Assembly: GCA_053919585.1 (NCBI GenBank)
Contig: CM132792.1
Reading direction: 5' to 3' (one strand)
From: Euprymna scolopes
Lineage: Eukaryota
Length of the DNA: 64,000 nucleotides
Position numbers and translations under genes: made by a program. Each line of letters starts with the position of its first letter. The stretch's first letter is position 1. The notes beneath the pieces are model-generated. The model saw nothing but the letters and a program-made list of their open reading frames with translations, was not told the DNA's origin and searched no databases. Shown here in pieces: positions 571 through 64,000 of the stretch.

Positions 571-870
571 ATACCACTCTGATAAAATCTGAGAAAGTCA
601 ATTTTGACCGTTTCAGATATGACCTGTTGGTTAGGCTTGCTGTTTGGGTTTTGTGCATTTTGCAACGGAATCTTCTCGTTCCCCGGTATTTAATGACTGT
701 CATCTCTCGCTGACATACAATGCAGTTCATTTTTTAAGCAACTATCTTCCTTTCCTTAAGGAACTAATATGTGGATTCAAAATCCTTGATCCATTCGGTT
801 AGCTCTGTAAACATTTTGGAAAATAAAGTTGTCTTGTGTTGTAATCGAAGTAAATGAACAGGAACCCTTC
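571..870 (-). pseudogene. Merlin (IS1016/ISXO2-like) transposase N-terminal remnant, copy A
   Basis: The minus strand reads FTELTEWIKDFESTY*FLKERKIVA*KMNCIVCQREM...RFRCKMHKTQTASLTNRSYLKRSKLTFSDFI. The DNA closely matches ~21260-21510, which continues into an unmistakable Merlin DDE core. Confidence 0.7.
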
Positions 871-1096
871 TTTTATATTACGTGTTGATACAGGTGAGTA
901 TTAAATAAAACCATGTTAGTAACTTGTTAGTGAAGCATTCATGAACAGAGGCGAGACGCACATGGTAACGTAACAAAGAATTTATTAACACTGAATAGAT
1001 AGCAGTTTACCACTAATACAAGTAGTGGGAGGTTGCAGTCAAGAGTGACGGTGGCAGTCACTAAGTCAAAGGGAGATAACTCGTGCTTATGTAACA
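871..1096 (-). repeat. Gypsy 3' LTR
   Basis: Direct repeat of 6337-6562, adjacent to a polypurine tract on the minus strand. Confidence 0.95.
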
Positions 1097-1298
1097 TCTC
1101 CGTTTTTTTTTTTCTTCTTCTTTTGTTTTAACTGAAAAATAAAAGTATTTTTATTTTTAGAGTTTTCTCATTTAGTCTCTGTATCGGACTGGACATTTAA
1201 TTGATCTCCCTTTCTGTGTGGAGTTTGGTATTATTTTGTTTTCCGAGCTTATCTTTAATACAACTTGTTTTTGACTATTTTCTTGGTTAAATATGTTT

Positions 1299-4200
1299 TC
1301 ATAGTCGTGTTTGATTTTGAACTTTTGATTTTTTTTTTGTTTTTAAAATATGACGTCTGTTGCGCCATACATATTTTCCTTGTTCTGTTTTTATTAGATA
1401 TGAATGAGGCTCTTTTAATTTTTTCACAATCTTACCTTTTAGGTTCCATTTTTCTTGTGAAAGAATACGGACAGTATCGTCTTTCTTTAGTTCTGATAGT
1501 TCTTTGGACTTTTTATTTATTTCATGCTTTTTCATTGTTTTGTTATGCATGATATTTGGAAGATTTGTCCTTAGCGTTCTTTTCATCAACTGTTGGGCTG
1601 GTGACGGGGTTTTATCTTTTAATGGTGAAGTCCGCTAACATTGCTAGGTATGGGTCTTGTCTACTTTCAAACGATTTCTTTAATGTTCTTTTAATTGTTT
1701 GAATGTTTCTTTCTACTAATCCATTCGATTGTGGATAGTTTGGACTTGTCGTGATATACCTGAAATCCTAATCTTTAGCAAATTGTCTAAATTCTGATGA
1801 TCGGTACTCGGGTCCATTGTCACTAATCACTATTTGTGGAATGCCAAATTTTGCGAAGGTGTTTTTTATTTTATTGATTACCGTACTTGATTTGCAGTCA
1901 TCAAGTTTGTGGATATCAAAATATCTAGTCGTGTAGTCTATTATCACTACATATGCTTTTATAAGTAAAATACGTCTGCCGCAACTTTGGTCCACGGTGT
2001 TACGGGTATTTCATGGTGTATTAGTGATTCTGACGGTTGTCGGTTTCTGTGATCTAGACAATGTGTGCATGTGCTAACCATTTCTTTTATTTGATTGTTT
2101 ATGTTAGGCCAATATACGACCTCTTTTGCTCTTGCAATGCACTTTTCTATGCCCAAATGTCCAGTGTGGATTTTTTGTAGGGCTTCCTTCCTTATGGAGG
2201 TTGGGACCGCTATTCGTGTACCTTTCAATACTAGTCCTTTCACAACCGATATGTCATCGCGGACTGGCATATATGGTGCTATTGTGGGTGGCACGTCCAT
2301 TTTTTCTGGCCAAGTTGATGTCGCATATTTCATGAGCATTTTTAGTGTTGGGTCTTTCCCAGTCTCCTCATGGTATATGTTGAGTTTTTGGTCGCTCATT
2401 GGATATTGTTTTATAATGGTATCAATATATTTGTCCATTTCTGTATCCGATATTTCTTGTTCGCTGTCTGTTATATATGCATGTGATAATGCATCAGCAA
2501 TTACGGATTCTCGCCCTGGAATGTATATTACTTCAAATTCGTATTTCTGAAGCGCGAGTAAGAATCTTTGTATTCTCGGAGGGCTCTTTGTAATGGATTT
2601 TTTAAAAATTTGCCTTAATGGTTTGATATCATTTTCTATGAGAAATTTTCTTCCATAGATAAATTGGTGGAATTTGTTGCAGGCGAACACTATGCTGAGT
2701 GTTTCCAATTCTAGCGGGCAGTAATTTTGTTCTGCTGGGGTTGTCGATCGTGACGCGTATGACACGGGTAACCATTTTTCATCATGTTTCTGTTGTAACA
2801 CCGCACTCAATCCATGTTTGCTGGCATCGATGGTGATTTTAATTTCTATGCTGGGATCATAAAATTTTAAAACTGGTAGGCTAGTTATTATCTGTTTTAG
2901 TTTTTCTATAGCCTCTATTTGAGGTTTGTCAAACGACCACAGTGTATCGTTGTGTAGCAGTACTCTCAACGGTGTAGTTACCTCTGAGTACTCTGCTATG
3001 AACTTGCACAGGTAGTTGGTCATTCCCAAAAATCGTTGGATTTCTTTTTTATTTTCGGGTAGAGGCATGTGTGTTATTGCCTTTATTTTAGAAGGGTCTG
3101 GTTTTATTCCTTCATCAGTGATCAAATGACCTAAATATGTTAATTGCTTTGTTGCAAATTCACATTTATTTTTGTTTAGTTTTAATCCAGCTTTGCGTAG
3201 TTGACTGAATACCTTGTCTAATGTTTTTATATGGTCCTCTAATGTTTCTGACCATATTATTGTCATCCTGTGAGTTCTTCGTTCCAGGTATGCCTTCTAT
3301 TATTTTTGCAACTTGTGCTTGAAAAATTTCAGAGGCACTATGTATGCCATATGGCAGGCGCGTGAACGAATAACGACCAAATGGCGAATTAAATGTTAAT
3401 AGTTAAGAGCTTTCTTCATCAACGGGTATTTGCCAATATCCCTTTGAAGCGTCTAATTTCGTGAAATATTTTGGATTTTCCATTTCTGCAAATATTTCTT
3501 CGGCGGGGGGTAATTTGTAGTGTTCTCTTTTTATGGCCTTGTTTAGGTCTCTAGGGTCCAAACATAGTCTTAATTTTCCGTTCGGTTTCTCCACTATTAC
3601 CAGAGAATTTACCCAATCTGTCGGTTCTTCAACGGGTTTTATTATTCCCATTTTTGTCATTTTTTTTAACTCCTTTTATAATTTTGGTTTCATCCCAAAC
3701 GGTATGTTCCTTGGAGGATTTATGATGGGTTTTATGTCCGGATTTATAGTTATATGATGTGTGACTGGTAATTTTCCAATGTCACCAAAGCAATCTTTAT
3801 ATTTTTCTTTTAATGCTTCTATGTCCGTCTTGTTTATTTCATAAGTTCTTTTTATCAGTCCTAGCTTTTCCGCTGTTTCTGCGCCGATTACTGCGTTTGC
3901 ATTTGTGTTTGCCACAATGAAATGCGAACTTACTTTTATATTTTTATTTTGTAATTGTATAACACAGCTCCCTATCGTGGGAATTTGCGTACAGTTGTAG
4001 GCGGTTAATTTTATAGACGTTTTATTTAATTTTGGCTTTGGTTTAATATTTTTATATATTTTTGATGGTAATACGTTTACTTCAGCACCTGTATCGATTT
4101 TGAAGTTGATGAGTGTTTCGTTGCCTCAAATCTTTACTTTCCATTTGTCAGTTTGTAGTGCGTCTACATTTTTTTTCAATATGGCGTCCATGTTGAACTG
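1299..4200 (-). pseudogene. pol: Gypsy pol (protease, RT, RNase H, integrase), disrupted
   Basis: Protease INFKIDTGAE (~4081-4110). RT LRLCLDPRDLN, KLDASKGYWQ and SQDD. RNase H DASKHGL and ELE. Integrase HHCC (HTGHLGIEKC...CTHC) and SDNGPEY. Split over ORFs 3676-3915, 3403-3660, 1959-3266, 1768-1995 and 1299-1589. Confidence 0.92.
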
Positions 4201-4351
4201 ATTTTGCTCCACGTGGTCTGAATTGTGTCCGACATTATATAGTTTCTTCTTTTTCGTTCGACACACTCGAGCGAAGTGTCCTTTTTTGCCGCAATTTGTG
4301 CAATTTTTATTATATGCTGGACAGTTTCCTTTTTGATGTGACCCAGCGCAG

Positions 4352-5573
4352 TGTTATGTTATGAAGCGTATGGTGACAAGCAAAAAGAATAGACAACACA
4401 GGATTAAGATTTGAACGAACTCAACAATTTATTTTCTAATAAATAACACAGAATAATAACGAGCTGTCCTTGGGGTGAAGATGGCAGATTGTTGTTAGTT
4501 GTTGTTATTGTGGTTATAAGGCACGACGAAACCTTCGTTTGTAATAGTAGTAGCAGCAGTGCTGGTCTGGTTATAATCGTGTGTCAATAGCGATAGTTGT
4601 TGTTGTTAGAAGGCGCGACGAAGCCTTCGTTGGTAATGGTAGTAGCAGCAGTGCTGGTTATAATCGTGTGTCAATAGCGATAGTTGTTGTTGATAGAAGG
4701 CGCGACGTAGCCTTCGTTGGTAATGGTAGTAGCAGCAGTGCTGGTTATAATCGTGTGTCAATAGCGATAGTTGTTGTTGTTAGAAGGCGCGACGAAGCCT
4801 TCGTTGGTAATGGTAGTAGCAGCAGTGCTGGTTATAATCGTGTGTCAATAGCGATAGTTGTTGTTGTTAGAAGGCGCGACGTAGCCTTCGTTGGTAATGG
4901 TAGTAGCAGCAGTGCTGGTTATAATCGTGTGTCAATAGCGATAGTTGTTGTTGTTAGAAGGCGCGACGAAGCCTTCGTTGGTAATGGTAGTAGCAGCAGT
5001 GCTGGTTATAATCGTGTGTCAATAGCGATAGTTGTTGTTGTTAGAAGGCGCGACGAAGCCTTCGTTGGTAATGGTAGTGCTGGTTATAATCGTGTGTCAA
5101 TAGCGATAGTTGTTGTTGTTAGAAGGCGCGCCGAAGCCTTCGTTGTAGTAGTAGTAGCATTGGTCGCGACAGCCGTAGCGTTGTGGTGATGGCGAGGCTG
5201 GTGGTCCTTCTGCTGTCTTTTCCTTGGCTTCGCTAAATATAGCAAGCACGCGGACGTAGTTGTAGACAAACGATTAGTGATGAAGAAATTGCCTCCATGT
5301 CGAGAAAACTGTGTTTCTTTTGGGTTGTTGTTTTCGCTACGGTGTGTAAGGCATCTAAGCGTTTTGCCCGTAATTTTGTGGAGGTAACCATGATCATGTG
5401 CCTCGACTTTGGTGCCATGGTAGCGATCGTAGCGTGAATCCCTACGTAGTCAGTTTCTCCCCAAAGCGGTCAGGAATCATGAAACTTGAGTGGTGGTCGT
5501 CACGGTGACACGTGGCAGACAGTATGACGGCGTCCCCAAGTCAAAACGAGATCTAAATCATAACATCATAACA
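4352..5573 (-). mobile_element. Solo LTR (1222 bp) inserted in the Gypsy gag zinc knuckle
   Basis: TGTTATG...CATAACA termini and a perfect 4-bp TSD GCAG (4348-4351, 5574-5577). Orientation is inferred from a minus-strand AATAAA near the left end and from the related PBS-flanked LTR at 29560. Confidence 0.88.
4512..5150. repeat. 87-bp tandem array (about 7 copies) inside the solo LTR
   Basis: The unit ggttataatcgtgtgtcaatagcgatag...gcagcagtgct starts at 4569, 4656, 4743, 4830, 4917, 5004 (shortened) and 5082 (partial). Copies are near-identical. Confidence 0.95.
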
Positions 5574-6244
5574 GCAGTATGTGCATGTCTCAATCCATTG
5601 TTGTGTTTTCGCGGGCTTTCTGTCTTCTCGTTTGAGCATGACTTTGGACGACATCTTGTTTTTCTTTGGGTTTCGGATTGTTGAGATACTTTCTGTCTTG
5701 CATGCAGCCATTATCTTAGAGTGTCTCTTCGTTTCTTCAGCACTCAGGCCTGCTTGTATTGCCTTTTGTAGATCCAGTGAAGGTTCTCTAAGCATTCTTT
5801 CTCTTAACATGCCGTTATGGACGCCATAAATTAGAATGTCTTTTATTAGTCTTTCAGTGAGATCGCCGAATTCACATTTGTTCGCCTTTTGCCATAATTC
5901 TGTGACGTACTCATCAAATCTCTGTGTTTCTTTTTGTTTGCATGTGAAAAATTGATATGTGAGAAACGTCAGGTTTTTTCTTGGTTGGCAGTGCGCGTCA
6001 AATTTTTCTATAACTTTTTTTTTTAGTTTAGCTTCTCTTCGTCATTTTCAAAGTTAAACGTATAATATATTTTCCTTCCCTCATTTCCTATACAAGTCAG
6101 CAATATTGAAGTTTTCACCTTCTCCGGTTTCTTGTTCGACTCTGTAGCTTGCAGGAACAATTGAAATTGGTTTTTTCCACGTTTCCCATTCCTGTCCGAG
6201 ATTATCCGAAGAGAAGTTAAATTCTTTTGGATGTGGTAAAAATT

Positions 6245-6275
<31 letters not shown>

Positions 6276-6336
6276 CTGTGAAAATATTAATATACGGATG
6301 TGAATGTTGACAGTTCAATGTTTTATTCTGACATCA

Positions 6337-6562
6337 TTTTATATTATGTGTTGATACAGGTGAGTATTAAATAAAACCATGTTAGTAACTTGTTAGTGAA
6401 GCATTCATGAACAGAGGCGAGATGCACATGGTAATGTAACAAAGAATTTATTAACACTGAATAGATAGCAGTTTACCACTAATACAAGTAGTGGGAGGTT
6501 GCAGTCAAGAGTGACGGTGGCAGTCACTAAGTCAAAGGGATATAACTCGTGCTTATGTAACA
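6337..6562 (-). repeat. Gypsy 5' LTR
   Basis: Direct repeat of 871-1096. On the minus strand it is followed by tgatgtcagaa, resembling the common tRNA-Leu PBS TGGTGTCAGAA. Confidence 0.95.
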
Positions 6563-7271: not shown

Positions 7272-8705
7272 TGTTGCGGTTGGTGGTTGACGGTCTGGGA
7301 GGACAATCGACCCTACCAGCAAACTAAAGGATAGACACGGGCAATGAACAAAACGACACAAAGGCAAAGAAGAGATGACAGACACAAAGGGTTCAGTTTA
7401 AAGACGTGAACACGCCTTTTATTGAAAATCAAAGAGATAATGTAAAAAAATAAAAATAAAGATAAGAATATGTCGGCTGACTGGCGTAGATGACGTACCA
7501 GAATGGGAATAGCAAAAGGGAACTGGTGCAGCAGGTCAAAAGCGGACCAGCGAAAGGTAGGTACTGGCGACTGGGGTAGGTTGCAGACAGGGAGTCCTGG
7601 AGACCGCAGAAGGAAACGGTGAACTGTAAGCACTGGAGGCTGCAGTGGGAAAAAGGTTAGGTTCGTGGAAGGTTTGAATGTTTGTTGGAAAAACTTTAAA
7701 GGCCCTGAAAACACAGTGGTGTTCTGAAAGTCTGGAACCTAGAGACTGCTGAAAGGCCGCAGGAGAAAAGTCGGGAACCTGGAGAAGGCCGCAGGATGAA
7801 AGGCTGGAACCTGGAGACTGCTGGAGGCCGCAGGAACCTGGAGAAGGCCGCAGGATGAAAGGCTGGAACCTAGAGAAGCTGGAGGCCGCAGGATGAAAAA
7901 TCAGGAACCTGGAGAAGGCCGCAGGATGAAAGTCAGGAACCTGGAGAAACTGGAGAAGGCCGCAGGAAGAAAGGCTGGAACCTGGAGAAGCTGGAGGCCG
8001 CAGGATGAAAGTCAGGAACCTGGAGAAGGCCGCAGGGAGAAAGGCTGGAACCTGGAGAAGCTGGAGGCCGCAGGATGAAAGTCAAGAACCTGGAGAAACT
8101 GGAGGCCACAGGATGAAAGTCAGGAACCCAGAGAAGGCAAACAGTTTTTTTGTTGTTTGTGGAAAAACTTAGGTGGCCCTGAAAAGGGCCGTTTGAACTG
8201 CTGCCGTTGTTCTTGTTGCTGTTGCTTGCTGTGGCTGCTGCTGCTGCTGCAAGGGAAGGGACCTCTGCCAAAGGTGCCATCAACTGAGTCGAGGTTCGGG
8301 AGTTCCCTACTCCCAGGCGGGTCAAAAAAAAACTGGCAAAAATGTGCCGTATACGTGACAACAGAGACGCATGACTGTCGCCGGCGCTGTCAAACACAAG
8401 TGTAACTTAAGAAAAATGTAGCAGGCCTACGATGTGATGAGAGTTCTTTTGGCTGGTGACTGAACCTAATAGTAAGAGTTTCGTATGAGAGGTTTTGTTA
8501 ATTATTTAAAGTAACTGATAAAAATTTAAGTAGAACGCCATTTCTGTAGGGTTTTGAGAAGCTACGAATTTGCAAGGGTTGTCTGGGCATGCGCAGACGT
8601 TAGTTTTCTCGCTGTCCCTTCAGTGAAGGAAAGAAGAAAGGAAAACGACAGAGACGAATTCTCGTCAGCAACAGTGAAGGCGGTGGATTTTTCCACACCG
8701 CGACA
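7272..8705 (-). mobile_element. Solo LTR (1434 bp) with internal minisatellite
   Basis: TGTTGCGG...CCGCGACA termini and a perfect 4-bp TSD CGTG (7268-7271, 8706-8709). A minus-strand AATAAA lies near 7417-7423. Confidence 0.82.
7730..8138. repeat. GA-rich minisatellite of ~27-36 bp units (ggaacctggagaaggccgcaggatgaaa variants)
   Basis: More than ten degenerate tandem copies are directly visible. Confidence 0.9.
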
Positions 8706-9643
8706 CGTGTAATTTAGTTTCAAGAACCGCCGACAGATGTCGTTTGTCAGCCAAAGAACCGGGGTCGATAACTATTGTTGTAATGAAAAAAAAAAGTTTC
8801 ATTCAACACACAAAACTAAAAACACATAGAAATGAAAAAAGTTGAGAAATTATTTTAATATTTATTTTAAGAAAATGCTATTAAAAAAGAAAAAAAGTCG
8901 ATAAAAGTGAGACATAAACAGTAAAACGTAGTCATTTAAAAAAGAAAATGCTATTTAAAAAAGAAAAGAAAAAGTCGATAAAAGTGATACATAAACAGTA
9001 AAACAGTTAAAAAAAAAAAAAAAAAAAAAGTCGATAAAAGTGATTAAAAGTGAGATATTAATAAATTTGTAGTAATGTCTTTTATTTCAATATTCATAAA
9101 CAGTAAAACAAAGTTGATAAAAATTCATGATCGTTTAGTTACTATGGCAACTAAAACATGTCCTTTGTTCATGCGTGGGGAGAAGTCAGTGTTTTTTTTT
9201 TTTTTTTTTTTTTAGGGTGTTCGGCAGGGAACTCTAATCGCGACCAGTACCAAACTTATAAAAATTATTTGTTTATATTGTTAGAAAACATGTGGCTAAA
9301 TGATGGGAACTTAAAAGCGGCTAGGGTTCGAATTATCACAACAGACAAAAAAAAAACTGAACCGTTGCAGCCGCCAGTCAACAAAGCAACAAACAGGAAG
9401 AAAAAATAATAAATAACGTTAGTTCTCTTACCTGCTCTTCAAAGTTGCGACGTTGCTGTTTTAGTGTCACGGCTCGTTGTGCCTGGTAACATTTATATCA
9501 ATATTAAACGAGACCTTTCATAGGCCCAAGGAAACAAGTAAAGTGTTCTCCCATACAAATAAATTTGTGGAAATAACCTCTCGGTGGGAAAAAAAAAAAA
9601 AATATAAAAAGAATAAAACGAATCCCGGCCGAGATTCACTCTT

Positions 9644-10047
9644 TGTTAATTAGAGAAAAAATAGTGTCTTTGGCCTTCCCAAAATTTGAATTTCGACGTT
9701 AGTCACATAAAAAGAAAATTTTAACATATTAGGTTGGCCAAAGGGTAGCAGGTAATAGATAGGGAATCAAAAAAATAAGAGACACATTGTTACTTCTCGC
9801 CTTCCCAAAATTAAATTCCGACATTAGTCACATCAAAAGAAAATGTTAACATATTAGGTTGGCCAGAGGAAAACAGAAAATAGAGGGTCGTAACATAATT
9901 TGTAAATTGTGTCCATGAGCCAGGATTACCGACCTGTTCCACCGTCTACCGGTTCCAACTGATCTATATATATACACAATCTTTACTCCTCCTGTCATTT
10001 ACATGTGCTAATTACCCCTTCTACAAAGAAAATAGATAATCCTAACA
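9644..10047 (-). repeat. BEL 3' LTR (404 bp, with an internal ~70-bp direct repeat)
   Basis: Matches 15925-16264 plus 20914-20983 and is followed on the plus strand by a poly-C tract (the PPT on the minus strand). Confidence 0.9.
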
Positions 10048-10099
10048 CCCCCCCCCCCCCCCGAATTGAGGTAAGGAAAATTCTTTCACTCTCCCATTC

Positions 10100-10131
<32 letters not shown>

Positions 10132-10185
10132 ATACATAAAATAAACCCCTTCTTTTTTTTTTTTTTAACTGACCATTGTAATAAG

Positions 10186-10640
10186 CTAAATGTCAGACAC
10201 CCCTCCTGGGTCTGCACAAGAAGAACAGTACCACTGATCCTCCTCTGCCGGAGCTTCATCTATGCCAGCACATTGCCAATGGATCCATTGATCACAACAT
10301 ATCATTGGTCTGTAATCTTCCGGTTCCTGACACTCAGGGCAGATCCATATTAACTCCTGATAGAGCATCGCCTGACACGCCGAACAATACCATCGACTCT
10401 CCTCTGGAGGTTCCCCCACTATAACAACACACTGCCAATGGAACCATTGATCACAATGATCACAACAGATCATTGGTCGCTGATCCTCCGGTTCCTGGCA
10501 ACCAGGGCAGATGCATATCAATTCCTGATTCGCACGTACAAAATCCACTGGGACAGAGGAGCCCGTCTCATCTCTCGACGTATCAGGAGCATAAGCTCTA
10601 TGACTGTGCGTTATAGCCAACTCCAATGGATACAATAATT
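10186..10640 (-). CDS. Tandem PHD fingers (TAF3-like) at the integrase C-terminus
   Basis: In frame with LYPLEL: CPGCQEPEDQRPMICCDHCDQWFHWQC...WYCSAC (C4HC3), then a second copy WICPEC...PMICCD---QWIHWQC...WYCSSC. Confidence 0.9.
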
Positions 10641-13600: not shown

Positions 13601-13701
13601 ATGCCCTCCCTTTCTTGTTCCAGGAAAACATCCAAATACTCCCTATATTTGTTTTCTTTTTCCAGTTTATTGAACACACGGTTCAAAACTGCTAACGCCA
13701 C
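10641..13701 (-). pseudogene. pol: BEL pol: RT, RNase H, integrase (frameshifted)
   Basis: 689-aa ORF (PHRPV, DIRKAFLQI, YVDN, NSADLLSR) followed by integrase fragments (RGIHLEVV, WERLIRTVK, NNRPLT, WTLGRV). Confidence 0.92.
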
Positions 13702-20905: not shown

Positions 20906-21019
20906 ATATACACAATCTCTACTCCTCCTGTCATTTACATGTGCTAATTACCCCTTCTACAAAGAAAATAGATAATCCTAACACCCCCCCAGAATTGAGA
21001 TAAGGAAAATTCTTTCACT

Positions 21020-37433: not shown

Positions 37434-37434
37434 T

Positions 37435-37475
<41 letters not shown>

Positions 37476-49447: not shown

Positions 49448-49566
49448 GTAAAATCCAAAAATGTAAATCCAAGAAAGTTAGTTAAATTTCAATTCGCATA
49501 AGTAAAATCCAAAAATGTAAATCCAAGAAAGTTAGTTAAATTTCAATTCGCATAAGTAAAATCCAA
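49448..49566. repeat. ~54-bp tandem duplication
   Basis: gtaaaatccaaaaatgtaaatccaagaaagttagttaaatttcaattcgcataa occurs twice, plus a partial third copy. Confidence 0.9.
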
Positions 49567-49679
49567 GGAAATCGCGTAATTGGAAGATGGTCCAAAATAA
49601 TCCAAAAGGCCAAATCCGTTGAATAATTCACAAATAGGTACGAGGAAAGAATTCCAGTAATATTATTAAAAGAAAAATA

Positions 49680-52210: not shown

Positions 52211-55063
52211 CAGTGGTTCTCAACCTTTTTCACTCCATTCCCCCCTTCATGAATTCTCAACATTCGTGTGGCTCCCCTTCATTTTTCTCCCAAATCCCAC
52301 CCTGCCAAAAAAGGCGCAGAAAAAAAAGAATAAATAAAATGTTGATGAAGAGAACACCCTTGCTTTATTACAAAGTTTACAGTCATAATTATCTTATATT
52401 GATAGATTTCTGTGATATGCTTAACTTACATCACTAGACTACAAAAGACTAGCAGACAATAGCAAATTTGATTTGGATGGGAGAAAGTTCAATTAACCTC
52501 TGCATACTTTATCACACATCAGTGGGAAGGCTGATATTGTTTCTTTTCAGTCAGTTGACGAATCCGAGGTTGTGTCACTGACAATGCACATCTCATGTCG
52601 GGGTCCACATCCAATCGGTTGCGGCTCTTATTCTTGATTTGTAGAAGGGTGGAGAAACCAGACTCACATAAATAGGTAGTTGAAAAAGGCAAGAGTAGTC
52701 GAAGTGCAATCTCACTGACTTGGATATGACTGATGCATCGAACACCAGAATACATTCAGAGATTTTTCTTCATAGAGATCTTTGGCAGCAGAATCATGTT
52801 TGAGATCAAGGAACTCGTCCTGAACATCACTGGGAATGGTAGTAATATCAAGAGTGCCAGAGAATGGATTCCTTACCAACTTCCCTTCTTCCTCCTCGAA
52901 TTCTGGGAAGTACATATTAAGTTCACTTTCCAAGGATCTCAGATGCTGGGTGATTTCAGTTTTAAGTAATGGGTCAAGCAGACTATCTTCTTCATTCTCG
53001 TCAAGGACAGCTGAAAGGTTTTCAAACATGGCAACATTCCCGGCACCGACTTTCCTTTGCCAATTCTGGAGCTTGGCAAGAAATCCACGAAGACAGTCCA
53101 TCAGGTGAAACACATTTCTTTCCTTGCCCTGTAGTTTCAGATTCAACCTATTTAGCTGCTCAAATATATCTGCTAAATATGCAAGACGTGGCTCCCACAA
53201 AACCTCATTGAAGTGACTCAACAGATCATCTTTCCCTTGCATTTCCAGGAACAATTTTAGCTCCCCCCGAAGTTCAAACACTCGATTCACAACATTGCCC
53301 TTGGAAAGCCAGCGCACTTTGGAGTAAAAGAGGAGAGCTTCATGCTCCGAATCCATGTCTCTACAGAGGTTCTGGAAAAGGCGAGAGTTCAGAGCTCCAG
53401 CTTTTACAAAGTTGACGCATTTGACCACTGCCTCCAGGATCTTGCAAAATTCATCAGGGAGGGTTTTCGACGCCAGTGCAAAACGATGGATCATACAATG
53501 AACCCCCTTGGCATTCGGAGCTACTTCCTTGACACGCTTCTGGAACCCTGATTTTGATCCCAGCATCGCTGGAGCCCCGTCTGTACAGACCCCACAACAA
53601 TTTTCCCATGGGATCCTGTTAGCTTTGAAGAAAGAAGATAGCTTTTCCATCACATCTTCAGCTGTTGTGGTGGTCTCAAGCTGTGTACATAACAGATATT
53701 CTTCCTTGATATCACACAAGAAAATATACCTAACAAACACGAGTAGCTGTGCACACGAACTCACATCCGTTGACTCATCCAGTTGTATTGCAAACATACC
53801 AGCTGGAGACGATTTGATCTCCTGTATCACTTTTTCCTTTATGTCATCTGACATTTCATTAATTCTCCGCTTCACTGTGTCGTTTGACAAGGAAATTTGT
53901 TGAATTTTACGTTCATTTGCATCTCCAAGAACACGCTTGACCATCTTTAAAGTACATGGCTTAATTAAGGTTTCACCAATTGTGTGGGGCTTCTTTTGCT
54001 TCGCTATTTCAAGGGCAACCTCGTATGATGCCTCAACTACACTTGAGGTCTGTTGTTGGAAAGCACCAGTTGCATCCAGTTTCTGTTTTCCGAAACTACT
54101 TTCATGGCGCCTGAAGAAATCGGGGTCTTTTTCAGCATACTGTGGATGGATGGTCTGCAAATGATGCTTCAACTTACTAGGCCTCATAGAATCGTTCCCC
54201 AACACTTTGAAGCACAGTACACACTGAGGTTTCTCGATGCCATCGGCGAGAATTGATGTAAATCCGTAGCTAATGTACTCTTCACTGTACTTCCGCTTCT
54301 TAGTAACACTAGTAGCCATCGCAAATCTAGGGAAAATAAAGAAGACAGACCATCAGAACAAACATTAAGTGATAAGACAAAAGAATGATAATGAAGGACA
54401 GATAAATAGGACAAGTGATAAAATGACAAACACACAAATATCCACATACATAATACATCCATGGACTCACACATTAAGCACACACACAGTCATACACAAA
54501 CATACACAGAGAGAGTAAAGATGATAAACATTCACACTCAACCTAGCAAGCTGAAATGTACTTTCTACAGCAAGAACACACCTCCTTTGACAAGCACTGC
54601 CCCAATTGAAATTATGAGAAGAATAGCGAGTCACATCAATATTAGCACTAAAAAAAAAAAGCAGGAATACCTGAGTAGGGAATGAGCATGAATACAATGA
54701 TACCAAAAAATAAGAAAATAATAAAGGAAGTGCACAAATATTTCACACACGAAAACAGCGACCGCATTTATAATTGTCGAACAAAATAAGTAAAACAGTA
54801 TACAGTATGGTTCAGAATCAATTATACCCACATGTTTACGTGCTGATATCCAAGGCCACACTGAGATAATTCGATCACCTCTCTCCCACATACATACACA
54901 CATACATACATACACACGTACACACACATTCGTAACAATATTATGTAGGTAACAAAATTTTATTGTCAACTTAATCAATTAAAAAAGAAAATTCCACCAT
55001 GGCCCCCCTAAATTATTGCCATGGCCCCCTTGGGGGCCATGGCCCCCAGGTTGAGAGTCTATG
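52211..55063 (-). mobile_element. hAT (Buster/ZBED8-like) element, complete
   Basis: Perfect 8-bp TSD GTATAGGT (52203-52210, 55064-55071). Imperfect TIRs CAGTGGTTCTCAACCT / CATAGACTCTCAACCT. Confidence 0.95.
52519..54319 (-). pseudogene. Buster-type hAT transposase with a single frameshift near 52715
   Basis: 535-aa ORF (PQCVLC, QLDESTD, TDGAPAM, VRWLSKG) plus a C-terminal STTYLCESGFS...YQPSH in another frame. Confidence 0.93.
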
Positions 55064-55257
55064 GTATAGGTGAAGAAGGTGCCAATCTTGGCGCACAATT
55101 TTCCCGCCGAAAGTCAAGCTGGCCGGTCATCAAATATTCCGTAATGCCGAACACAATGAGACATTATAGTTTTTTAGAGAAGGGAATCGTTCGCCACTTC
55201 TACTCATTAATTCGCTCCTTATAATATTAGGAAATTTTGCAAATAATACATGGGCTA

Positions 55258-55925
55258 TCAATGCCCCTGAGGTTCTACCCTCAATAAAAAAAAGTCAGTC
55301 TCGAAAGACTTATCAAATTTCGTCAGATCTTGTTTAACCTTTTCGAGAAATGTCCTTAAATTTTTTAGATTCAGTACATGAGACGGACTAGGAATAATCT
55401 CTTTGAGAACTTGATTTCTAATTAAATCTGGATTTAAATATTTCTCCCTTAAAAGTTCCAGGGCTACATCATACTTGTCCAATGTTACATCTAGACTGGA
55501 GACCACTTTGAAAGCTTCTCCTTCTAGTTTAGATTTAAGTACTAACAATTTGTCAGCCTTGTTCAAATTATCTGTACAAAATTTGAATTTATTCAAAAAA
55601 GTTCTGAAAGAAAACTTATCGTCCATAGACATACCGGAAAACCTTGGACAGTCCAGTTGCATCTTTACGGGCATAACTGTCATAGGTTGAATATCTCGTG
55701 GTGTATCAATTTTCAATTTCAACGATAACAATTTTTCTTCAATTTCTGAAGAAAACTGAATTCTCACAGATGCGATTTCTCTTCATCCTGAGTCTTGGTT
55801 AGTACTAAGTCTATCAAATCATCCAGATCCTTCAACCAACTTCTAATTACCGGCTCGCGGGACCTTAAAATATCTTGTGAAGGGTTGTTATTATCTAACC
55901 ACTTCACAGCACTATTTATGCAAAG
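55258..55925 (-). pseudogene. gag: BEL gag fragment
   Basis: LDCPRFSGMSMDDKFSFRTFL...LKSKLEGEA is homologous to the gag at 13667-15769. Confidence 0.8.
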
Positions 55926-55928
55926 TTT

Positions 55929-58292
55929 TTAGTCATTAATTCCGTTATGACCATGATTCGGCGAAAATAGAGGGATAGGACAGAATTTAATCAAACAAGA
56001 GCCAAACTTCCGTTGATAATCGTGGCTCAACATCAACCTCTTAAACAACCGCCCACCTCCTATGAACGTATTAGCATTGTTACAGTAAATGGCTATTGGA
56101 ATGCCATGGAGGTTTGTAAAATGTACCAAAGCCTGCAAAAAGGCCAACACGCTCATGTCTGGTACCACCTCAACATGTACAGCCCTGATACTGAGACAGG
56201 TGAAGATGAGTAGATACATTTTCACCACGTTAGCGCACCTTCCTTAACCCAAAGGTGGCCCGTGAAATCTACTCCCGTGTGTTTGAAGTGAACCTCCAGT
56301 TTAATACGTGAAGCAGGCAAGTTGGCCACATTGGGGGGCATGTGGGGGGAGGCAATACCTGTCTGGCATTTTACTTATGGCACAGTGTACATGAAGCCAG
56401 GACTGTTTACACAGCTTGACTGCCCTTGGGCACCCAGTAACCACCCCGTCTTAACTCTGCCAGAGTGGATGCAATCCCCAAGTGTTGACACGTTGTATGC
56501 GCATCCATTATTATAAGCAGAGTTAATGGGTGATATTTTACTAACAGAACAGGGTGCTTAACTTCCATGCCGAAGTGGAGAGACTTAGAAATTTTGCCAC
56601 CTGACCTGATAAGACCCTCACCATCAACAAACAGATCAAGGAGACACACCAAACCTGGAACTGTCTTACCTGAGGAATCCAACAGGAATGCTAGATCCTC
56701 AGCATATGCCTGGCACTGCATCATTTTCATCAGCAAAATGGCTGCAAGCCTTTCCACGTCAACTTCTGACGCAACTGATGGTTGAAGGAAGTCACCCTCT
56801 ATAGCTTGGTGAAGGAAGAAAATTTTTCAAGGGGAAGAACTGTAGGTAATTCTTTTCCCTGTAGGATGGCAGCATTCCAAGAAGAACAGGCCACCACTTG
56901 GCTGTGCTGGTTGAGGCATGGCAACTGCTGTGCAGCCCATGGACTGATCCCGCTCTACTTAACCAATCTGAACCAGAACACCAGAAATGAAGGCAAGCCT
57001 TGAACCTTTCAAGTTTAACCCCCTAGTGATCAAATCAGCAGGATTCTTAGCCGTTGGGACATAGCGAAATGAGGGCGAGAAACCGAGTGTGGCTTCCAAC
57101 CCAGCACTCCTCTTTTAGATGTCCTTCAGTCTATTGCAGACAAAGGTTTCTGCTTACAGTTGTTCCACAAATTAGCCAAGAGAGGACCACCTTCGAATCT
57201 GTGGCCATATGAATCGCAGAAGGAGAGAATCCTCCAAAATTCCTCAACAAAGTAGGTAGGCACCTGAGAGCCAAAAACAGTCATAAGTTCTAAGGTGGGT
57301 AGAGTTTTCTTTTCCAAGGGAGCCACCCCAACTTTTGCAAACACTAGACCAGATAAGATGGGATTGGCAATTTTGCGATGCATATGCTGCAAAGCCATAT
57401 GCCTCTGGAGATACAGAAAAAGTTTGCCAGCTTCATTCTTGCTGAGTGCTCTTCTGGGGAAGGAAACAGTCTCCAGCTCGGAGAGATCAAGAGAAAGCTT
57501 CCTCCATAAGTATTCCGGTGGGACTGTTACATCCCATCCAAATCCCTACTTCCAAAGTTCACTCAACAAAATTCGGCCCGTAACAAAACAGGTAGGCACG
57601 ATGATAATGGGTCATAGTGTAGCTGTCTCACTGAGGATCCGTCTCTTCATAAAGGCACTAGAGTCGCACTCAACAGCAGCTACATGAAGAGTGTCTGAGA
57701 GAGGACGGCATGTATATCTGAGCACCTCTCATTTATTGCCATGCTCCTTTATTTTGTTTTGAATCTTCACATGGTCAGAATTACAGGACTGCAGTTCGAA
57801 TCCTCCCTGACACAATTGTTCCTGGGTGAGTGTATAATCGGCACAGTTCATTAGGATCCTAATGCAATATACCAGATTATCCACGTAGAACCGATTCTCC
57901 ATCATTGATCTACAATTATCCATGGGAAACTGAGCCGCATTGTATCTAAGGACATAATTCAATATAAACGGACTAGAAGCATACCCAAAAATAATTGTGT
58001 TATATCTAAAGCAGCATAGGCAACCTCCCTCCTTTAGAAAAAAAAACAGAACTTATTCCTGTCAGATTCGAGCTTCAGCTGGATCATTAAGAAGGCCTTC
58101 TTGATATTGATATCTGCTAACACGACATGCTTATTAGCGCATAAGATGAGTAATAAATTTAATAGGTCATTAGTGAGATTTATTCCCTGGTAGGTAGCCT
58201 CGTTAAGGAAAGGAGAGTTACTAATTTTGAGATTGCAGTTGAACACTGGCCGAATCTTAGTGGTAGAGGTAGAGTCCGATTTCAGGACAGGC
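55929..58292 (-). pseudogene. pol: BEL/Pao pol (RT-RNase H-integrase), degenerate
   Basis: TTKIRPVFNC, FYVDN, LPTLEL, IRAVHVEVV; many frameshifts. Confidence 0.9.
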
Positions 58293-58420
58293 CATGGCCT
58301 ACTTATATACATGGCCTTTCAACCTACATTTTTCACCGGTCTCGCAACAGGCCTATTTCAAAGTGAAAGTAAATTATGTCTATATCATCTGAAAAATGTT
58401 AGAACTGTAAATACGTAAAT

Positions 58421-58463
<43 letters not shown>

Positions 58464-61400
58464 CAGAAAATTATTATTAAAATAAAATATTTTAGGCAAA
58501 CAAATAAATTTTAATTAAAAAAAATTATACAGTAATACAAAAACATATATAAAAATGAAGTTACCTTTCTTTTTTAAATTAATTTTCTTTAGACCTTTGC
58601 CTTTTTTTAAAGCATTCCACAGTATTTTTCCGCACTTCATTGGATGAAATTTTTTGTTTATTGTTGTAAAATATATTTACAACAATTCTTATTGCAAAAA
58701 CAAGTCCCTTTTCAGCGTGTTTTTTACATGAAAAACTATATTTTGGAGAATATATTGCCAAAACGTGTTCTGCAGACACTCTTGTTGTGGATTCATGATT
58801 TTTTACTATAAATTGATCTGCATATTCAAGGATAGCAAAACAAGCATAAACAAACTCTGCCATTTGGTTTGATGGAACAGTAAGACCTCGAGAAAGTAAG
58901 TCATGGTATTTCTTATGTGTAGCTTCATCACTATCTTTGCCTACCATAACCTGGGAACAAATTTCACATTGAAAATGATTCATTAATTTTTTTGCGATGT
59001 ATCCAGAAATAGTAAATGCTACTTCTTTGCTTTCTGGGGACAAAGATACATTATTCATTTCTGATTCATGCAGGGCCAAAATGTTTATTAGTTCGTCTGT
59101 CTCTTGAACTGACTTGAAGTCTTCCTCCCAAAAGTTGTTTATTTTTAGAAGTATGCGACAGGTCAATATTCTCTCAGTACTCATTACTTCTCGAAAACCC
59201 ACCAAAAATCTACCACCACTCATCTGTCGATATTGAGAAAATCTATTTTCAAGTGGGTCAGTTTGAAACCTACGGGTGAAAATAAACTTGTACCCTTCAT
59301 CTAAAAGTTCTTGCATAAGCATAGCCTGTCCTCTCAAAGTTATAATAAAAGCTTTAGAAGTTTGCTTTGTCAGGCAAAAATCAGAAATTTGTGTCCAAGA
59401 CTCAATCCAATCAGATAATCTTTTGTAGAAATCAAGTTTTCCAGCATTTAAAATTACTGCATTGTTCAAAAAATTGGGTGTCAGCATTTGTTTTGAATTT
59501 GCTATTGCCCACCAACATGATATCAATTTAAGGAAGTTTGACATGTCAGGACGATCAGGAAAATAACTCTGACAAGCTGCAATAGTTGTCTCGTGAAAAA
59601 TGGAAATTGCTAAATTAACATTTTCTTTATTATCACTAGGGTGCAAGGCTTTGAATGTTAGCTTTGGAGCCTTGCGTAATTTAGCATTTAGGGCAGTATC
59701 TTTGTTATATACTTCATATAAATCAGACCAATCTATATATCCCTCCTTAGAGGAAACAGAAATATTTGAGATATCAAATGTAAATGCAGGAAATACAAAT
59801 TTCTTTTTATTTAATAAACTATTACGAATATTTTTTAGCAAATGAACAGAATCAAAAAACAGAAATATTTTATGGGGAGTATTAGGAAGAGTTATATAAT
59901 GCATTTTGTCCCCCTCAAATTTATGTAGTAAAATGTTAAAAGCATTTACATTGGTTGAATGAGTATCTGCAACAACAGCCCTAATAAAAAATCCAGAAGT
60001 TATCAGTTGTAAAATACATTTTAGGATTTCCTGAGAAAGCCACTCACCGTTTATTGTTACTTCGGGACAAGCTTTAACAACTGATGGTACTGTTTCTTTT
60101 AAGCCAGTAATCATAAATACCATTACTCCTTTATAAAGTTCATCATTTTCGTTTGAACCTATATAATCTCCACCGTGAAATTGTGTTCCTTTTTGAAGAT
60201 ACATTTCATCCACTAATAAAACACATTCCTTCGAAAGATGACCGGTCTCCAGTAGTTTTTTGGCAGCTGTAATGGATCCCACACCACCTGCTTGAATTTT
60301 TTCTAATAAAGAAAAAGATGGTAATGGAAATTTCTCCAGAAGTAATTTATAGGCTTGCCTTGATGTATATCGAATTAGTAAGGCATAACGTATTACGTCT
60401 GCAGAAAATGGAGGACCGCCTTTTGGTTTATAATATTGTCTTTTTTGTAACTCGTTTAATAGGGAAAACGAGTTTTCTTCAACTACATTTTTCATATATG
60501 TTGGGAAATTTTCTAACATGCTAAATTTAGTCAGTTTAGCACTGGTTCCTTGTGTAAACCATTGTGGTAATGGTACAGGGTTTCCATTATATTGAAGCTG
60601 GACATGAAGATTTCGATCAATGCGGATACACTCTTTGATAGATGGAAAATGAGTTTTGGGATCAAATACAATTCTATAAATTAAAATATAATCTTGGTGT
60701 TTTTTAAATTGAAAACCAGACGGGCAGCATTTTTCAGTCAACTGTGTAAAGTCCGTTATCGTGTCGGCTGAAAGAAAATCTTTTAGTTCATCCTTTTCAA
60801 TTCGACGTTGCTTGGGGGGTTTTCTAAAACTTGTTTGAGTTGGCAAAAGTGACGTTTTTATTATTTTTTTTGAATGAATTGTGGGTATGGGTTGTAAATT
60901 CCAATTCAACTTGTTTTTTTTTTTGTTTTTTTTTCGTTTCAAAATGTATTTTTCCTCAAAATGTTTAATACAGAGAACTGAATTTTTCGTAGGGAACCAA
61001 TCATTTCGATTAACAAATTTAATCCATTTTTCAATGAGATCTAATTTTCCGAAAGGAAAAGAAAATGTGGAAACCTTTTCAATATTTGTAGAATATCCAC
61101 TGGAACAGCCAAATGCTACACATTTGTTAACCATTTTTTAAACAAAATTTTCACAAATAATTTTAAATTAAAATATAATTAATATGTTGCGTTAGCAGAT
61201 AATAAGGAACTATGGAATTCTAAGAAAAACACTTAGGAGCTTAAAAAATCAAGAAAGGTAACTCTTGACTACTAATCCCTTATGGTATTATTATAATTTT
61301 CTTTTACTGTAAACATGAATTTTTGTGTTGAAAACAAGTTTATAAATAAAAATAAGTCCTAATAAATTATCAGGAAATTTATAAATTATTTATTGAAGTT

Positions 61401-61555
61401 CAAAAAACATAATTCTTAAAGTTACGCCCCTTTTAATTTTTTTCAATTACCTAAGGGGTCATTTTGTTTATGTTAAACCACTTTCACTTTGTGGGCCTGT
61501 TTTGAGACCGGTGAAAAAGGTAGGTTATGGGGCCCATGTATATAAGTAGGCCATG
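58293..61555 (-). mobile_element. P element (THAP transposase) with ~60-bp TIRs
   Basis: Perfect 22-bp TIR CATGGCCTACTTATATACATGG extending imperfectly to ~60 bp and enclosing an 851-aa ORF. Confidence 0.93.
58579..61134 (-). CDS. P-element transposase, uninterrupted 851 aa
   Basis: THAP C2CH (CVAFGC...W...LCIKHF...PIPTI), LLVDEM, VVAD, FDSVHLLKNIRN, QTDPLENRFSQYRQ. Confidence 0.93.
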   Translation of the reverse strand: MVNKCVAFGCSSGYSTNIEKVSTFSFPFGKLDLIEKWIKFVNRNDWFPTKNSVLCIKHFEEKYILKRKKNKKKNKLNWNLQPIPTIHSKKIIKTSLLPTQTSFRKPPKQRRIEKDELKDFLSADTITDFTQLTEKCCPSGFQFKKHQDYILIYRIVFDPKTHFPSIKECIRIDRNLHVQLQYNGNPVPLPQWFTQGTSAKLTKFSMLENFPTYMKNVVEENSFSLLNELQKRQYYKPKGGPPFSADVIRYALLIRYTSRQAYKLLLEKFPLPSFSLLEKIQAGGVGSITAAKKLLETGHLSKECVLLVDEMYLQKGTQFHGGDYIGSNENDELYKGVMVFMITGLKETVPSVVKACPEVTINGEWLSQEILKCILQLITSGFFIRAVVADTHSTNVNAFNILLHKFEGDKMHYITLPNTPHKIFLFFDSVHLLKNIRNSLLNKKKFVFPAFTFDISNISVSSKEGYIDWSDLYEVYNKDTALNAKLRKAPKLTFKALHPSDNKENVNLAISIFHETTIAACQSYFPDRPDMSNFLKLISCWWAIANSKQMLTPNFLNNAVILNAGKLDFYKRLSDWIESWTQISDFCLTKQTSKAFIITLRGQAMLMQELLDEGYKFIFTRRFQTDPLENRFSQYRQMSGGRFLVGFREVMSTERILTCRILLKINNFWEEDFKSVQETDELINILALHESEMNNVSLSPESKEVAFTISGYIAKKLMNHFQCEICSQVMVGKDSDEATHKKYHDLLSRGLTVPSNQMAEFVYACFAILEYADQFIVKNHESTTRVSAEHVLAIYSPKYSFSCKKHAEKGLVFAIRIVVNIFYNNKQKISSNEVRKNTVECFKKRQRSKEN

Positions 61556-62415
61556 ATGTACCCTAGGAATTTTTTAAAAGAGGAAACACTTTATGGCTAG
61601 AAATACCGACAAGAGTTCCAATGTTGGGAGGGATTTTCCCTCGATAGGTGCCATTTTTGTTCTGACAAACACTAAGGATGAGTTTTCATCCTGTATAGTA
61701 TAGTGAAAAACCATATGCACTTTTAAATGTATCACAAAAGAAAAATAACTTTGTATCCATTCCTTCATCCAAAACTGTCCTAGGAAAAGATACGGAATCT
61801 AATGCTGATAGATCGTTCGCCAGCGTTCTCAATACTGATCTCATGCTTTGTGGAACCCCATCATCTCAACTTAATTTTTGTCTCCACAATTGCCTCATCA
61901 ACAGACAACTTCACAAGGTTACGGGCAAATAAAGAGACAAAGGATCAAATATTTTAGAGATCTCGGATAATATCTTCCTCTTACTGGAGGCTTCCATAAT
62001 GCATCAGTTTAGGAGGGGGGGAGATTTTTATGGAATCCTGAACTGAGTCATACAAATATTCCAACAGTCTTTCCCAACCAGAGTCAAATCTGTTTCCATT
62101 TTCTTTTGGAGCTTTACAGAGTTAAAATTGCAAGACTACAAATCAAAATTCCTTTTATGTAGACGCTCTCTTACAGATGTATATAAAAAAGATAGGGCTT
62201 CTGCATTATTCCCAGTTTCTACTTGCCTACATAGAAATTGGACTTCAGTGCTTGCAAATGTTCATTCCAAGGGAATTTTGTGCATAAAACTTGTGTACAT
62301 GATTTAAAATAAAAGGATTTAAAGTGAATCCAAATATAATGGTTTTGTACCAGTAACAATGCAAGGTTTTACCTTTCTTCAGGAAAAAAACCGATTACAA
62401 TCTTTTTCATTGATA
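61556..62415 (-). pseudogene. pol: BEL/Pao RT-RNase H fragment
   Basis: KSLPTLELLSVFLAIKC and FDPLSLFA-like segments; heavily frameshifted. Confidence 0.75.
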
Positions 62416-62419
62416 GTCC

Positions 62420-64000
62420 ATTTATTTCGGGTTTGCAAAAGGGGTAAGTATTGGCCCTTCCACCGGTGCCAGAATGTCTGCGCCAAGTGTTGAACATTCC
62501 TCCATTGTCACCGAGAAGCGTCCTTTATGTCAAAGCTGCCTAGAGGTGCAGGAACGGGTCCAGTCTTTTGGGTTAGGAGTATCGAAGGAGTCAAGGGGGC
62601 TGGATGCTGTGGGTCTGAGGAAACTTGAATGAGAGGTCTGTTGTTGATAATTGCGGCCACTTCGGCTAAGAAGGTGGTGAGCACTTCATGTGTCAGTCTG
62701 GTGCTTCCATGTTAGAGCAGCATGGAATCGAGGATTCTCTTGGCAATCCCTACCATTCTTTCCCACACTCCACCCTTGTGAGGTGCATGTGGAGGGTTGA
62801 AGAGCCAGGAACAACCATGATCAGCGAGGTGTCTATTTACCGTGCTGGTATTCAGGTTGAATTCGATATCCAATTCTTTCCTAGCTCCGATGAAATTGGA
62901 ACCTTGATCAGAACGGATGATCTTCACAGGACCCCGAATGGAAAAAAAAACGTCTGAGGGTATTTATCAAGCAAGAGGTATCCAGTGACTTCAAGTTTCA
63001 ATATGAACTGCTCTTGTTGACATGCACGTGAAGATCGCAGCCCACCTTTTGCTGTTGGCTAAGCCTCCCCTAGTTCGTCGAGACGTGATGAGCCAAGGCC
63101 CAAACACATCAAGTCCCACATTGGTAAAGGGGGTTTCAAAGGACAGGCGGTCCCTAGGTAGATCAGCCATCTTTTGAATTTGAGTAGGTTCGCAAAGCTT
63201 TCTACAAACTACACGGCAGTGTATAATCCTGCTTATGGGCTTCTTTCCGCCGACAATCCAGAAGCCGGCGGAACAGACTGCACCTTCTGTGAAGTGACGA
63301 CCTTGGTGGTGTATAAGCTGGTAGTGGTGCTTAATAAGCAAGACTGCTACATAGTGCTTTCCTGGAAAGATGAGGGGATGTATGTCGCTGTGATCCAGTG
63401 TGGCTTTACGGCTGCGGCCACCAACCCTGAGGAGACCTTCATTATCGATGAAGGGATCTAATTTGCGGAGTTGGCTGTTCTTGGGGAGCTCCTTGTTTTC
63501 AGGCAGGCAGGAGAATTCCAAGGCATAGATGTCTCTTTGGGCCGACTGGATGATTATATTAAACAGTTGCGCCAGTGCTTCTACTGGAAGTGGTCTTTTG
63601 CAGTAGTGCTAACCGTTACAGTCATCTGTGGTGTCGCTTATGTGGAACGACTGGGATATGTGGATCAAACGAGCGACTGCTTGTTTTACTGTTTTTCAAG
63701 TGGAGATCTTGTGAAGCGGTGGCCCTCGAGCCATACTGAAGAACAATGGGAGGCGAAAGCCGCTACCTTCGGCCGGATTTTAGTCACTTTCAGGATCCAC
63801 TAAGCAATGGGGTTTAGGTTCAGAACGGTTGAAGGTGGGCTTGGAAATGAATAGTGGTCCTTTAAGCCAAGCTGTGGTTGAAAGTTGGGTTGAAGGAATT
63901 GATCTAGTTCCGCTGTCGGCTGGGTTTCTATCTGTGGGCACATAGTGCCATTGTTCAGGCCGAGATGACTGACGGATGCGGCGCACTCAATTGCTGACAT
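62420..64000 (-). pseudogene. pol: BEL/Pao (different lineage) RNase H-integrase, running off the window end
   Basis: WHYVPTDRNPAD, LRVGGR, HHQGRH, GLDVFGPW, RAVHIE, IRSDQGSNF, GGVWER; GC-richer than neighbours. Confidence 0.9.

Follow-up and report, generated by a model that had tools for sequence, protein, structure and literature searches.

Co-oriented transposable elements over at least 184 kb of the Euprymna scolopes genome: a candidate uni-strand piRNA cluster

Why should transposable elements (TEs) of many unrelated classes lie almost all in one orientation over a long stretch of DNA? The question is raised by a 64,000-nucleotide segment of the Euprymna scolopes genome (GCA_053919585.1, contig CM132792.1; C10:44702001-44766000), hereafter the window, which had been proposed to be a uni-strand PIWI-interacting RNA (piRNA) cluster of the flamenco type. 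The assembly comprises 5.9 Gb in 925 contigs, at least 46 of which are chromosome-sized. We analyzed 264 kb, i.e., the window and 100 kb on each side, with coordinates given relative to the window. Stop-to-stop open reading frames (ORFs) were typed with Pfam, a strand profile was obtained by local tblastn of all 84 non-shadow ORFs of at least 150 amino acids (aa) against the 264 kb, and element boundaries, that is, long terminal repeats (LTRs), terminal inverted repeats (TIRs), and repeat pairs, were taken from self-BLAST. Genome searches served to count other copies, some totals being first-look candidates and others copies scored as full length. The co-orientation was found to extend over at least 184 kb, from about -20.5 kb to at least +164 kb, and these limits define the domain used for counts and coverage. 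Its architecture is what would be expected of a transcription unit on the plus strand in which insertions are selected for orientation, and we give an even chance to its being, more specifically, a uni-strand piRNA cluster.

Extent and composition of the strand bias

Within the window, Pfam and tblastn together yielded 21 independent insertions on the minus strand and 2 on the plus strand, the same tally as the 21 of 23 orientable TE segments in the original prediction. Minus-strand TE-coding homology covered 26.7 kb by tblastn versus 1.66 kb for the plus strand, and every stop-to-stop ORF of at least 250 aa was on the minus strand. The sole plus-strand Pfam domain was the PIF1 helicase of a Helitron (33826-34707), and the degenerate Merlin, hAT, long interspersed nuclear element (LINE), and BEL fragments that tblastn added were all minus. 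The binomial P value of 6.6e-5 reproduces the figure of about 7e-5 given earlier. However, it is not significant for a single window, because a 5.9-Gb genome contains about 92,000 windows of this size, and about 6 windows as biased are expected by chance genome-wide.

The bias is significant through its extent, since it reaches far past the window. Long ORFs are almost all minus throughout the right flank to +164 kb and in the nearest 20 kb on the left. In a conservative count, in which same-family fragments overlapping in the part of the protein covered were scored as separate copies, the domain holds about 50 or more minus insertions versus 6 to 7 plus insertions (P of about 4e-9). With about 32,000 domains of 184 kb per genome, about 1e-4 domains this biased are expected by chance genome-wide, and chance was therefore rejected as an explanation. 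TE-coding homology between -20.5 and +164 kb amounts to 75.4 kb on the minus strand (92%) and 6.6 kb on the plus strand, whereas that between -100 and -20.5 kb is balanced overall, with 10.4 kb minus versus 10.3 kb plus; the TE-coding share is 44% in the domain versus 26% in the left flank. Since these 80 kb further left are balanced, the bias is local and not a property of the genome as a whole. In 20-kb bins, the minus strand prevails from about -60 kb rightwards, and the bin from -80 to -60 kb is plus-rich. The left edge thus lies between about -60 and -20 kb, and on the right the domain runs beyond +164 kb. Among repeats of the same family separated by more than 3 kb, a count that takes in the two LTRs of individual elements, 43 pairs are direct and 7 inverted in the domain, versus 6 and 10 in the left flank.

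The bias is spread over element classes. At least 26 DNA transposons are minus and 2 are plus, comprising at least 9 independent Merlin copies (all minus), 7 hAT, 3 Tc1, and 2 Helitron elements, together with P, mariner, Transib, and an element bearing a PHD finger, while retroelements number 15 minus versus 2 plus. One insertion mechanism cannot account for an equal bias in both groups. The elements of the flanking co-oriented stretch were typed by Pfam as Merlin (two), Gypsy (several), Helitron (two), Transib (with a RAG1-core match), Tc1/IS630 (three), Penelope, BEL (three), and hAT (two). The domain consists of stacked, nested elements of very different ages, and the segments sampled in genome searches were multicopy. 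No host-gene domain was obtained by Pfam from any window ORF of at least 100 aa, in keeping with the earlier statement that no host exon is visible there, and neither an exon nor a host-gene domain was seen across the 264 kb in the ORFs scanned. The architecture described for the locus, namely a nested, TE-dense tract with about 90% co-orientation, therefore holds over at least 184 kb. The features of the window are, from left to right:

572-823, minus: Merlin (IS1595-like DDE) transposase fragment, 58% by tblastn to the Merlin ORF at -7680..-6778, beside the Gypsy insertion site
871-6562, minus: full-length Gypsy with LTRs at 871-1096 and 6337-6562 (98.2% identical); reverse transcriptase (RT), RNaseH, integrase, and protease by Pfam
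7272-8706, minus: unclassified multicopy repeat with ORFs of 141-181 aa; copies at 83-90% elsewhere, no Pfam match
9594-16255, minus: full-length BEL/Pao with LTRs at 9594-9974 and 15875-16255 (95.8% identical); gag, Peptidase_A17/RT, DUF5641, and a C-terminal PHD
16260-20905, minus: intact hAT with a 646-aa transposase ORF at 16455-18392 (Pfam)
20993-21524, minus: Merlin transposase fragment (tblastn, 57-60%)
22563-23357, minus: unclassified multicopy element with a 265-aa ORF; 96% copies elsewhere, 51% aa identity to the ORF at -2731..-2069, no Pfam match
24265-24429, plus: C-terminal fragment (55 aa) of a transposase that we take to be of the Tc1/mariner type (maT-like), from family knowledge of the SPDLN..DY..W motif in its translation; no match to a hidden Markov model
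30259-30465, minus: Merlin transposase fragment (tblastn)
31951-32990, minus: hAT transposase fragment (tblastn, 27-48% to hAT ORFs)
33401-34745, plus: Helitron PIF1-helicase fragment (Pfam PIF1), forming a repeat unit of 1.35 kb for which 39 other copies were scored at about 89-91%
34789-34890, minus: hAT fragment (Pfam/tblastn survey)
35420-39850, minus: old degenerate element bearing a PHD finger at 39554-39847 (Pfam), essentially unique in the genome
40690-42291, minus: hAT with dimerization domain, core, and zinc finger (Pfam, tblastn)
43700-43888, minus: LINE fragment (tblastn, 77% to LINE ORF2)
45072-46721, minus: Penelope-like element with RT and GIY-YIG endonuclease (Pfam)
46863-47387, minus: mariner transposase fragment (Pfam Transposase_1, E = 1.8e-24)
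49539-50015, minus: LINE fragment (tblastn, 79% to LINE ORF2)
52715-54352, minus: hAT-family transposase ORF of 546 aa (tblastn, 29-58% to hAT ORFs; 66% DNA identity to 41310-41907)
55169-55782, minus: BEL/Pao gag fragment (DUF1759, Pfam)
56374-58291 and 61631-62388, minus: BEL/Pao pol (Pfam, tblastn), split by the P element
58293-61555, minus: P element with TIRs of about 78 bp (58293-58370 and 61480-61555) and an intact 852-aa THAP transposase ORF at 58582-61137
62994-64000, minus: BEL/Pao (tblastn), running to about 67457 past the window

Several of these insertions come from families that are low in copy number or currently active. A twin of the hAT at 16260-20905 lies 100 kb away at 116094-120737, in the same orientation and 99.83% identical, and the hAT family gave 189 first-look candidates in the genome, of which about 30 were scored as full length, all near 100% identical. 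The twins point either to local hopping or to the domain having captured the family more than once. The P element is nested in the BEL pol and has about 5 other full-length genomic copies at 95-97%. As for the other elements, the young Gypsy at 871-6562, which sits by the first Merlin fragment and within a repeat family, has its pol at 1962-4125, genomic copies at 95-97%, and a tandem repeat of about 87 bp at 4504-5159, and the reference Merlin ORF at -7680..-6778 matches Pfam DDE_Tnp_IS1595. The gag-pol of the BEL/Pao at 9594-16255, with its DUF5641 and PHD tail, lies at 10189-15796 by Pfam, and the Pfam BEL fragments on the right together span 55169-57545. One class assignment was only partly borne out, since the stretch at 35420-39850 had been called a Mutator-like element (MULE); the PHD finger is present, but it was the only Pfam match among the ORF pieces, and the MULE core was not verified.

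The maT-like fragment and the Helitron helicase, both recovered here, are the only plus-strand elements of the window, as already proposed. Outside it, the exceptions in the domain are:

-17850..-14650, plus: LINE of 3.2 kb with an intact 1032-aa endonuclease-RT ORF
80.7 kb and 113.6-114.8 kb, plus: two unclassified ORFs
99166-99702, plus: Gypsy gag piece adjoining an inverted copy of itself

Of all the exceptions, the LINE is the largest. At least 39 further copies of its family, spread over many chromosomes, are 99-100% identical over 3.2 kb, and from this similarity the family appears to be active now. The insertion is thus very recent, and selection has had no time to act on it. It lies within a minus-strand Gypsy with LTRs at -20246..-19794 and -12862..-12411 (98.9% identical). 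All other plus-strand exceptions are small or old.

The plus strand of the domain is also skewed in composition, with T exceeding A by 6.2% (versus 1.7% in the left flank) and G exceeding C by 2.9%. Runs of at least 10 nucleotides number 73 for T and 44 for A, and the AATAAA hexamer occurs 254 times on the plus strand and 356 times on the minus strand. Sense strands of transcribed DNA in mammals show T-over-A and G-over-C skew. In the domain, composition skew and polyadenylation-signal counts themselves follow from TE orientation. Depletion of polyadenylation signals on the plus strand was considered as extra evidence and rejected, as it follows composition (observed ratio 0.71, expected 0.61).

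A viral fragment shares the orientation of the transposons. An ORF at 139642-140163 (minus), outside the window, matches Parvo_NS1 (Pfam, E = 4e-17) and the adeno-associated virus (AAV) Rep40/Rep68 helicase (PDB, E = 1e-8), and it looks like an integrated densovirus-like sequence. It lies inside a head-to-tail direct repeat of about 5.2 kb (134825-141646) with arms 97.8-99.2% identical. The adjacent ORFs (136582-138519) matched no known family, although relatives of them lie at 85.0-85.9 and 93.4-94.8 kb, and a search of solved structures with two ORFs adjoining the NS1-like fragment gave no match. In mosquito genomes, piRNA clusters typically carry endogenous viral fragments, and Aedes piRNA clusters bearing endogenous viral elements (EVEs) hold viral fragments among transposons. 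The present domain resembles these Aedes clusters in having a viral fragment among co-oriented TEs, although here a single NS1-like fragment was identified.

A candidate plus-strand transcription unit and its rivals

One orientation across many unrelated integration chemistries most likely reflects selection with respect to a directional feature running through the whole domain, and the simplest such feature would be a long plus-strand transcript. Such a transcript is our inference, as are its conversion into piRNAs and the role of selection in producing the bias. The whole domain would then form a single long plus-strand transcription unit of RNA polymerase II (Pol II), and TE sequence would be required in antisense in its product. 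Insertions that yield antisense RNA would be kept or favored, and sense insertions would be purged, since they would introduce polyadenylation and splice signals of their own and yield sense piRNAs of no use. Active families would keep landing in the domain, which would act as a heritable record against them. This reading is favored by the bias of about 90%, its equal strength in DNA transposons, the viral fragment, the recurrent arrival of active or low-copy families (a pair of near-identical hAT elements and one of about 6 full-length P elements), and precedents in Drosophila and molluscs, and on this evidence we regard the piRNA-cluster reading as evenly poised between true and false.

Transcription was examined with RNA reads aligned at 97% likeness to positions 35001-41000, which are mostly unique in the genome; 1.5-1.8 Gb were sampled per run, from unspecified tissues. 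Two poly(A) RNA sequencing (RNA-seq) runs and one single-cell run gave 23, 10, and 9 reads on these 6 kb, nearly all of them partial matches. The overhangs of these reads are similar but not identical to the local sequence, and no part of the 264 kb contains them; the reads were therefore judged to be derived from paralogs. Hence, the three raw RNA runs contained no locus-specific reads on 35001-41000. No joints were seen in the reads. This null result is neutral with regard to a precursor restricted to certain tissues or carrying little poly(A). In a fourth library (oligo-dT RNA-seq, 281 Mb), contigs matched the unique segments 35001-35450 and 38401-39800 exactly at a depth of 2-12. These contigs most likely derive from RNA, because pure genomic DNA of that size would represent only 0.05x of 5.9 Gb. 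In the same interval, the (TA)n microsatellite at 40001-40200 reached a word depth of about 20,900 from the contigs of one RNA library, which is a mapping artifact.

Several observations weigh against a plus-strand piRNA precursor. The three sampled runs contain no abundant polyadenylated transcript of 35001-41000, and the strand of the fourth-library RNA is not readable from its contigs. The plus strand still holds its 254 AATAAA hexamers. No promoter or first exon was identified in the region, where the left edge is placed only between about -60 and -20 kb. Unique promoter-like DNA was sought at -26 to -20 kb, with nothing diagnostic found; a genome search of this 6.1-kb interval gave 38,910 first-look candidates, and among the matches listed (94-95%) all fell on a miniature inverted-repeat transposable element (MITE). 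Likewise, a scan for CpG islands and GC content near the left edge located no promoter, the high observed/expected CpG values corresponding to young GC-rich Gypsy elements. Finally, the same selection on orientation would be expected if the domain lay in a long intron of a gene on the plus strand.

The latter explanation survives best among the rivals, although we consider it rather unlikely. It holds that the domain lies in one or more giant introns of a plus-strand host gene or long noncoding RNA, with purifying selection against sense insertions and no piRNA function. In a genome of 5.9 Gb, introns longer than 100 kb are plausible, and the plus-strand skew (T over A, 6.2%; G over C, 2.9%) has the sign of transcribed strands, although it is confounded by TE orientation. 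In mammals, an intronic antisense bias of LTR elements and LINEs is well documented and has been ascribed to such selection (PMC3088655; also the abstracts of PMC3517506 and PMC1794541). The domain would resemble mammalian introns in that orientation is selected relative to a long Pol II transcript, sense insertions being lost for their termination or splice signals (PMC3088655, PMC1794541, PMC3517506). However, the mammalian bias has been reported as moderate and particular to LTR elements and LINEs, DNA transposons having been omitted for small numbers (PMC3088655), whereas the bias in the domain is about 90% and includes DNA transposons, among them Merlin fragments of 200-500 bp, as strongly as retroelements (at least 26:2 versus 15:2). 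The pattern found here is therefore neither moderate nor mainly one of LTR elements and LINEs. The lack of any exon or host-gene domain in the 264 kb and of an intronic read signal over 35001-41000 in the three RNA runs also argues against an intron. If the domain is nonetheless intronic, orientation selection in a gene would be near-absolute and reach DNA transposons, beyond mammalian descriptions.

It is very unlikely, in our estimation, that the co-orientation has no transcript behind it and stems from the way in which elements insert (local hopping, nesting preference, or target-primed reverse transcription into A-rich strands), from chromatin or replication polarity, or from chance. Mechanics do have some effect elsewhere, as nested L1 and Alu elements in intergenic human DNA are biased about 2- to 2.6-fold to the orientation of the host element (PMC2836564). 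In the domain, the A-rich minus strand could reinforce the bias for LINEs, and the two near-identical hAT copies 100 kb apart could be a case of local hopping. A 2-fold bias, however, cannot yield a ratio of about 8:1, and the insertions are mostly LTR and cut-and-paste or rolling-circle elements with unrelated chemistries and no known orientation preference. Segmental duplication as a source of co-oriented copies was rejected, since no large duplication is present and the longest repeat internal to the domain is the 4.6-kb hAT. Chance is excluded by the P value of the domain set against the number of such domains in the genome.

The least probable alternative, to which we give little credence, takes the domain as the right arm of a bidirectional, divergently transcribed cluster with a minus-transcribed left arm of plus-strand TEs at about -80 to -60 kb; that interval does hold 7.5 kb of plus versus 0.7 kb of minus homology (about 6 elements versus 1), with the minus strand prevailing from -60 kb rightwards, but the arm rests on about 7 elements, a run of a length expected by chance, two of its six plus elements belong to the same young Gypsy family (99.5% to the minus copy at -37 kb), and the only two elements detected from -100 to -80 kb are both minus.

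Relation to known piRNA clusters

In Drosophila, sliding-window TE strand bias located flam-like clusters, and the candidates with small-RNA data gave one-strand piRNAs (PMC10643416). Like flamenco and the flam-like clusters (van Lopik et al. 2023, PMC10643416), the E. scolopes domain belongs to a nested TE tract on the scale of hundreds of kilobases in which no host gene was seen and whose insertions would almost all be antisense to the proposed transcription. As with the flam-like clusters, it is detectable from strand-specific TE coverage alone and includes recent insertions of active families. In contrast, the bias and enrichment of flam-like clusters are carried by Gypsy-type endogenous retroviruses, with none in other LTR elements (PMC10643416), whereas here, of about 57 insertions, only about 5 are Gypsy elements (counted irrespective of env), and the bias extends to DNA transposons, BEL, Penelope, and LINE elements. 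The bias is thus not specific to env-bearing elements of the Gypsy type, as a strict definition of flamenco would have it, and the locus is better placed among candidate uni-strand piRNA clusters in the general sense, flamenco-like in architecture.

In molluscs, unidirectional piRNA-producing loci are described for Pinctada fucata in the excerpted text of PMC6342924, and the corresponding excerpts for Lymnaea and Crassostrea (PMC6128900) and for Pinctada fucata (PMC6342924) describe one-strand mapping and TE-derived, antisense-enriched piRNAs in gonad and soma. These loci are from the same phylum, but they were defined from small RNAs, whereas the present locus was defined from its DNA alone, and no TE orientation bias of all classes over more than 100 kb is described in those excerpts. 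We found no paper joining piRNA with squid or cuttlefish genomes in the open literature searched. A confirmed cluster would thus be a first for the group, although systems of this kind are already known.

If the piRNA-cluster reading is true, a uni-strand piRNA cluster would have been recognized from sequence in a giant mollusc genome. The equal bias of DNA transposons, retroelements, and a viral fragment would then imply that orientation selection in such clusters need not, unlike in Drosophila, be tied to retroviral Gypsy elements, and strand-specific TE coverage would offer a genome-only criterion for mapping clusters in large, poorly studied genomes. A further step, which we advance only tentatively as a possibility, is that very large uni-strand piRNA clusters form a family of which this locus is one member, and that they take in all TE classes along with viral fragments. 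Under this broader reading, cut-and-paste DNA transposons and viral fragments would be subject to orientation selection as strong as that on retroelements, and the main defense against transposons and viruses would consist of antisense primary piRNAs from a few giant one-strand units, with a target range far broader than that of flamenco.

Minor features of the window and left flank

A search with Rfam over 144 kb gave nothing beyond a marginal Histone3 3' stem-loop at 8150-8195 (minus; 35.1 versus a threshold of 34 bits), which lies inside the unclassified repeat at 7272-8706. It could possibly mean that this repeat uses a histone-like 3' end, or it may be a chance match. The same repeat contains a tandem sub-repeat at 7725-8138. 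In the BEL/Pao at 9594-16255, the terminal ORF (10189-10668, minus) has two PHD-finger matches downstream of the DUF5641 integrase tail, an unusual addition of a chromatin reader.

In the left flank, two Gypsy copies with an intact 1425-aa gag-pol lie 30 kb apart in opposite orientations, at -67779..-62286 (plus) and -37460..-31980 (minus), and are 99.5% identical over 5.5 kb; a partial copy is present at -62568..-60401. A palindromic MITE of about 590 bp occurs at about -21860..-21270 and at -12180..-11604, -68758..-68161, and -99201..-98647, with copies flanking the Gypsy at the left side of the domain.

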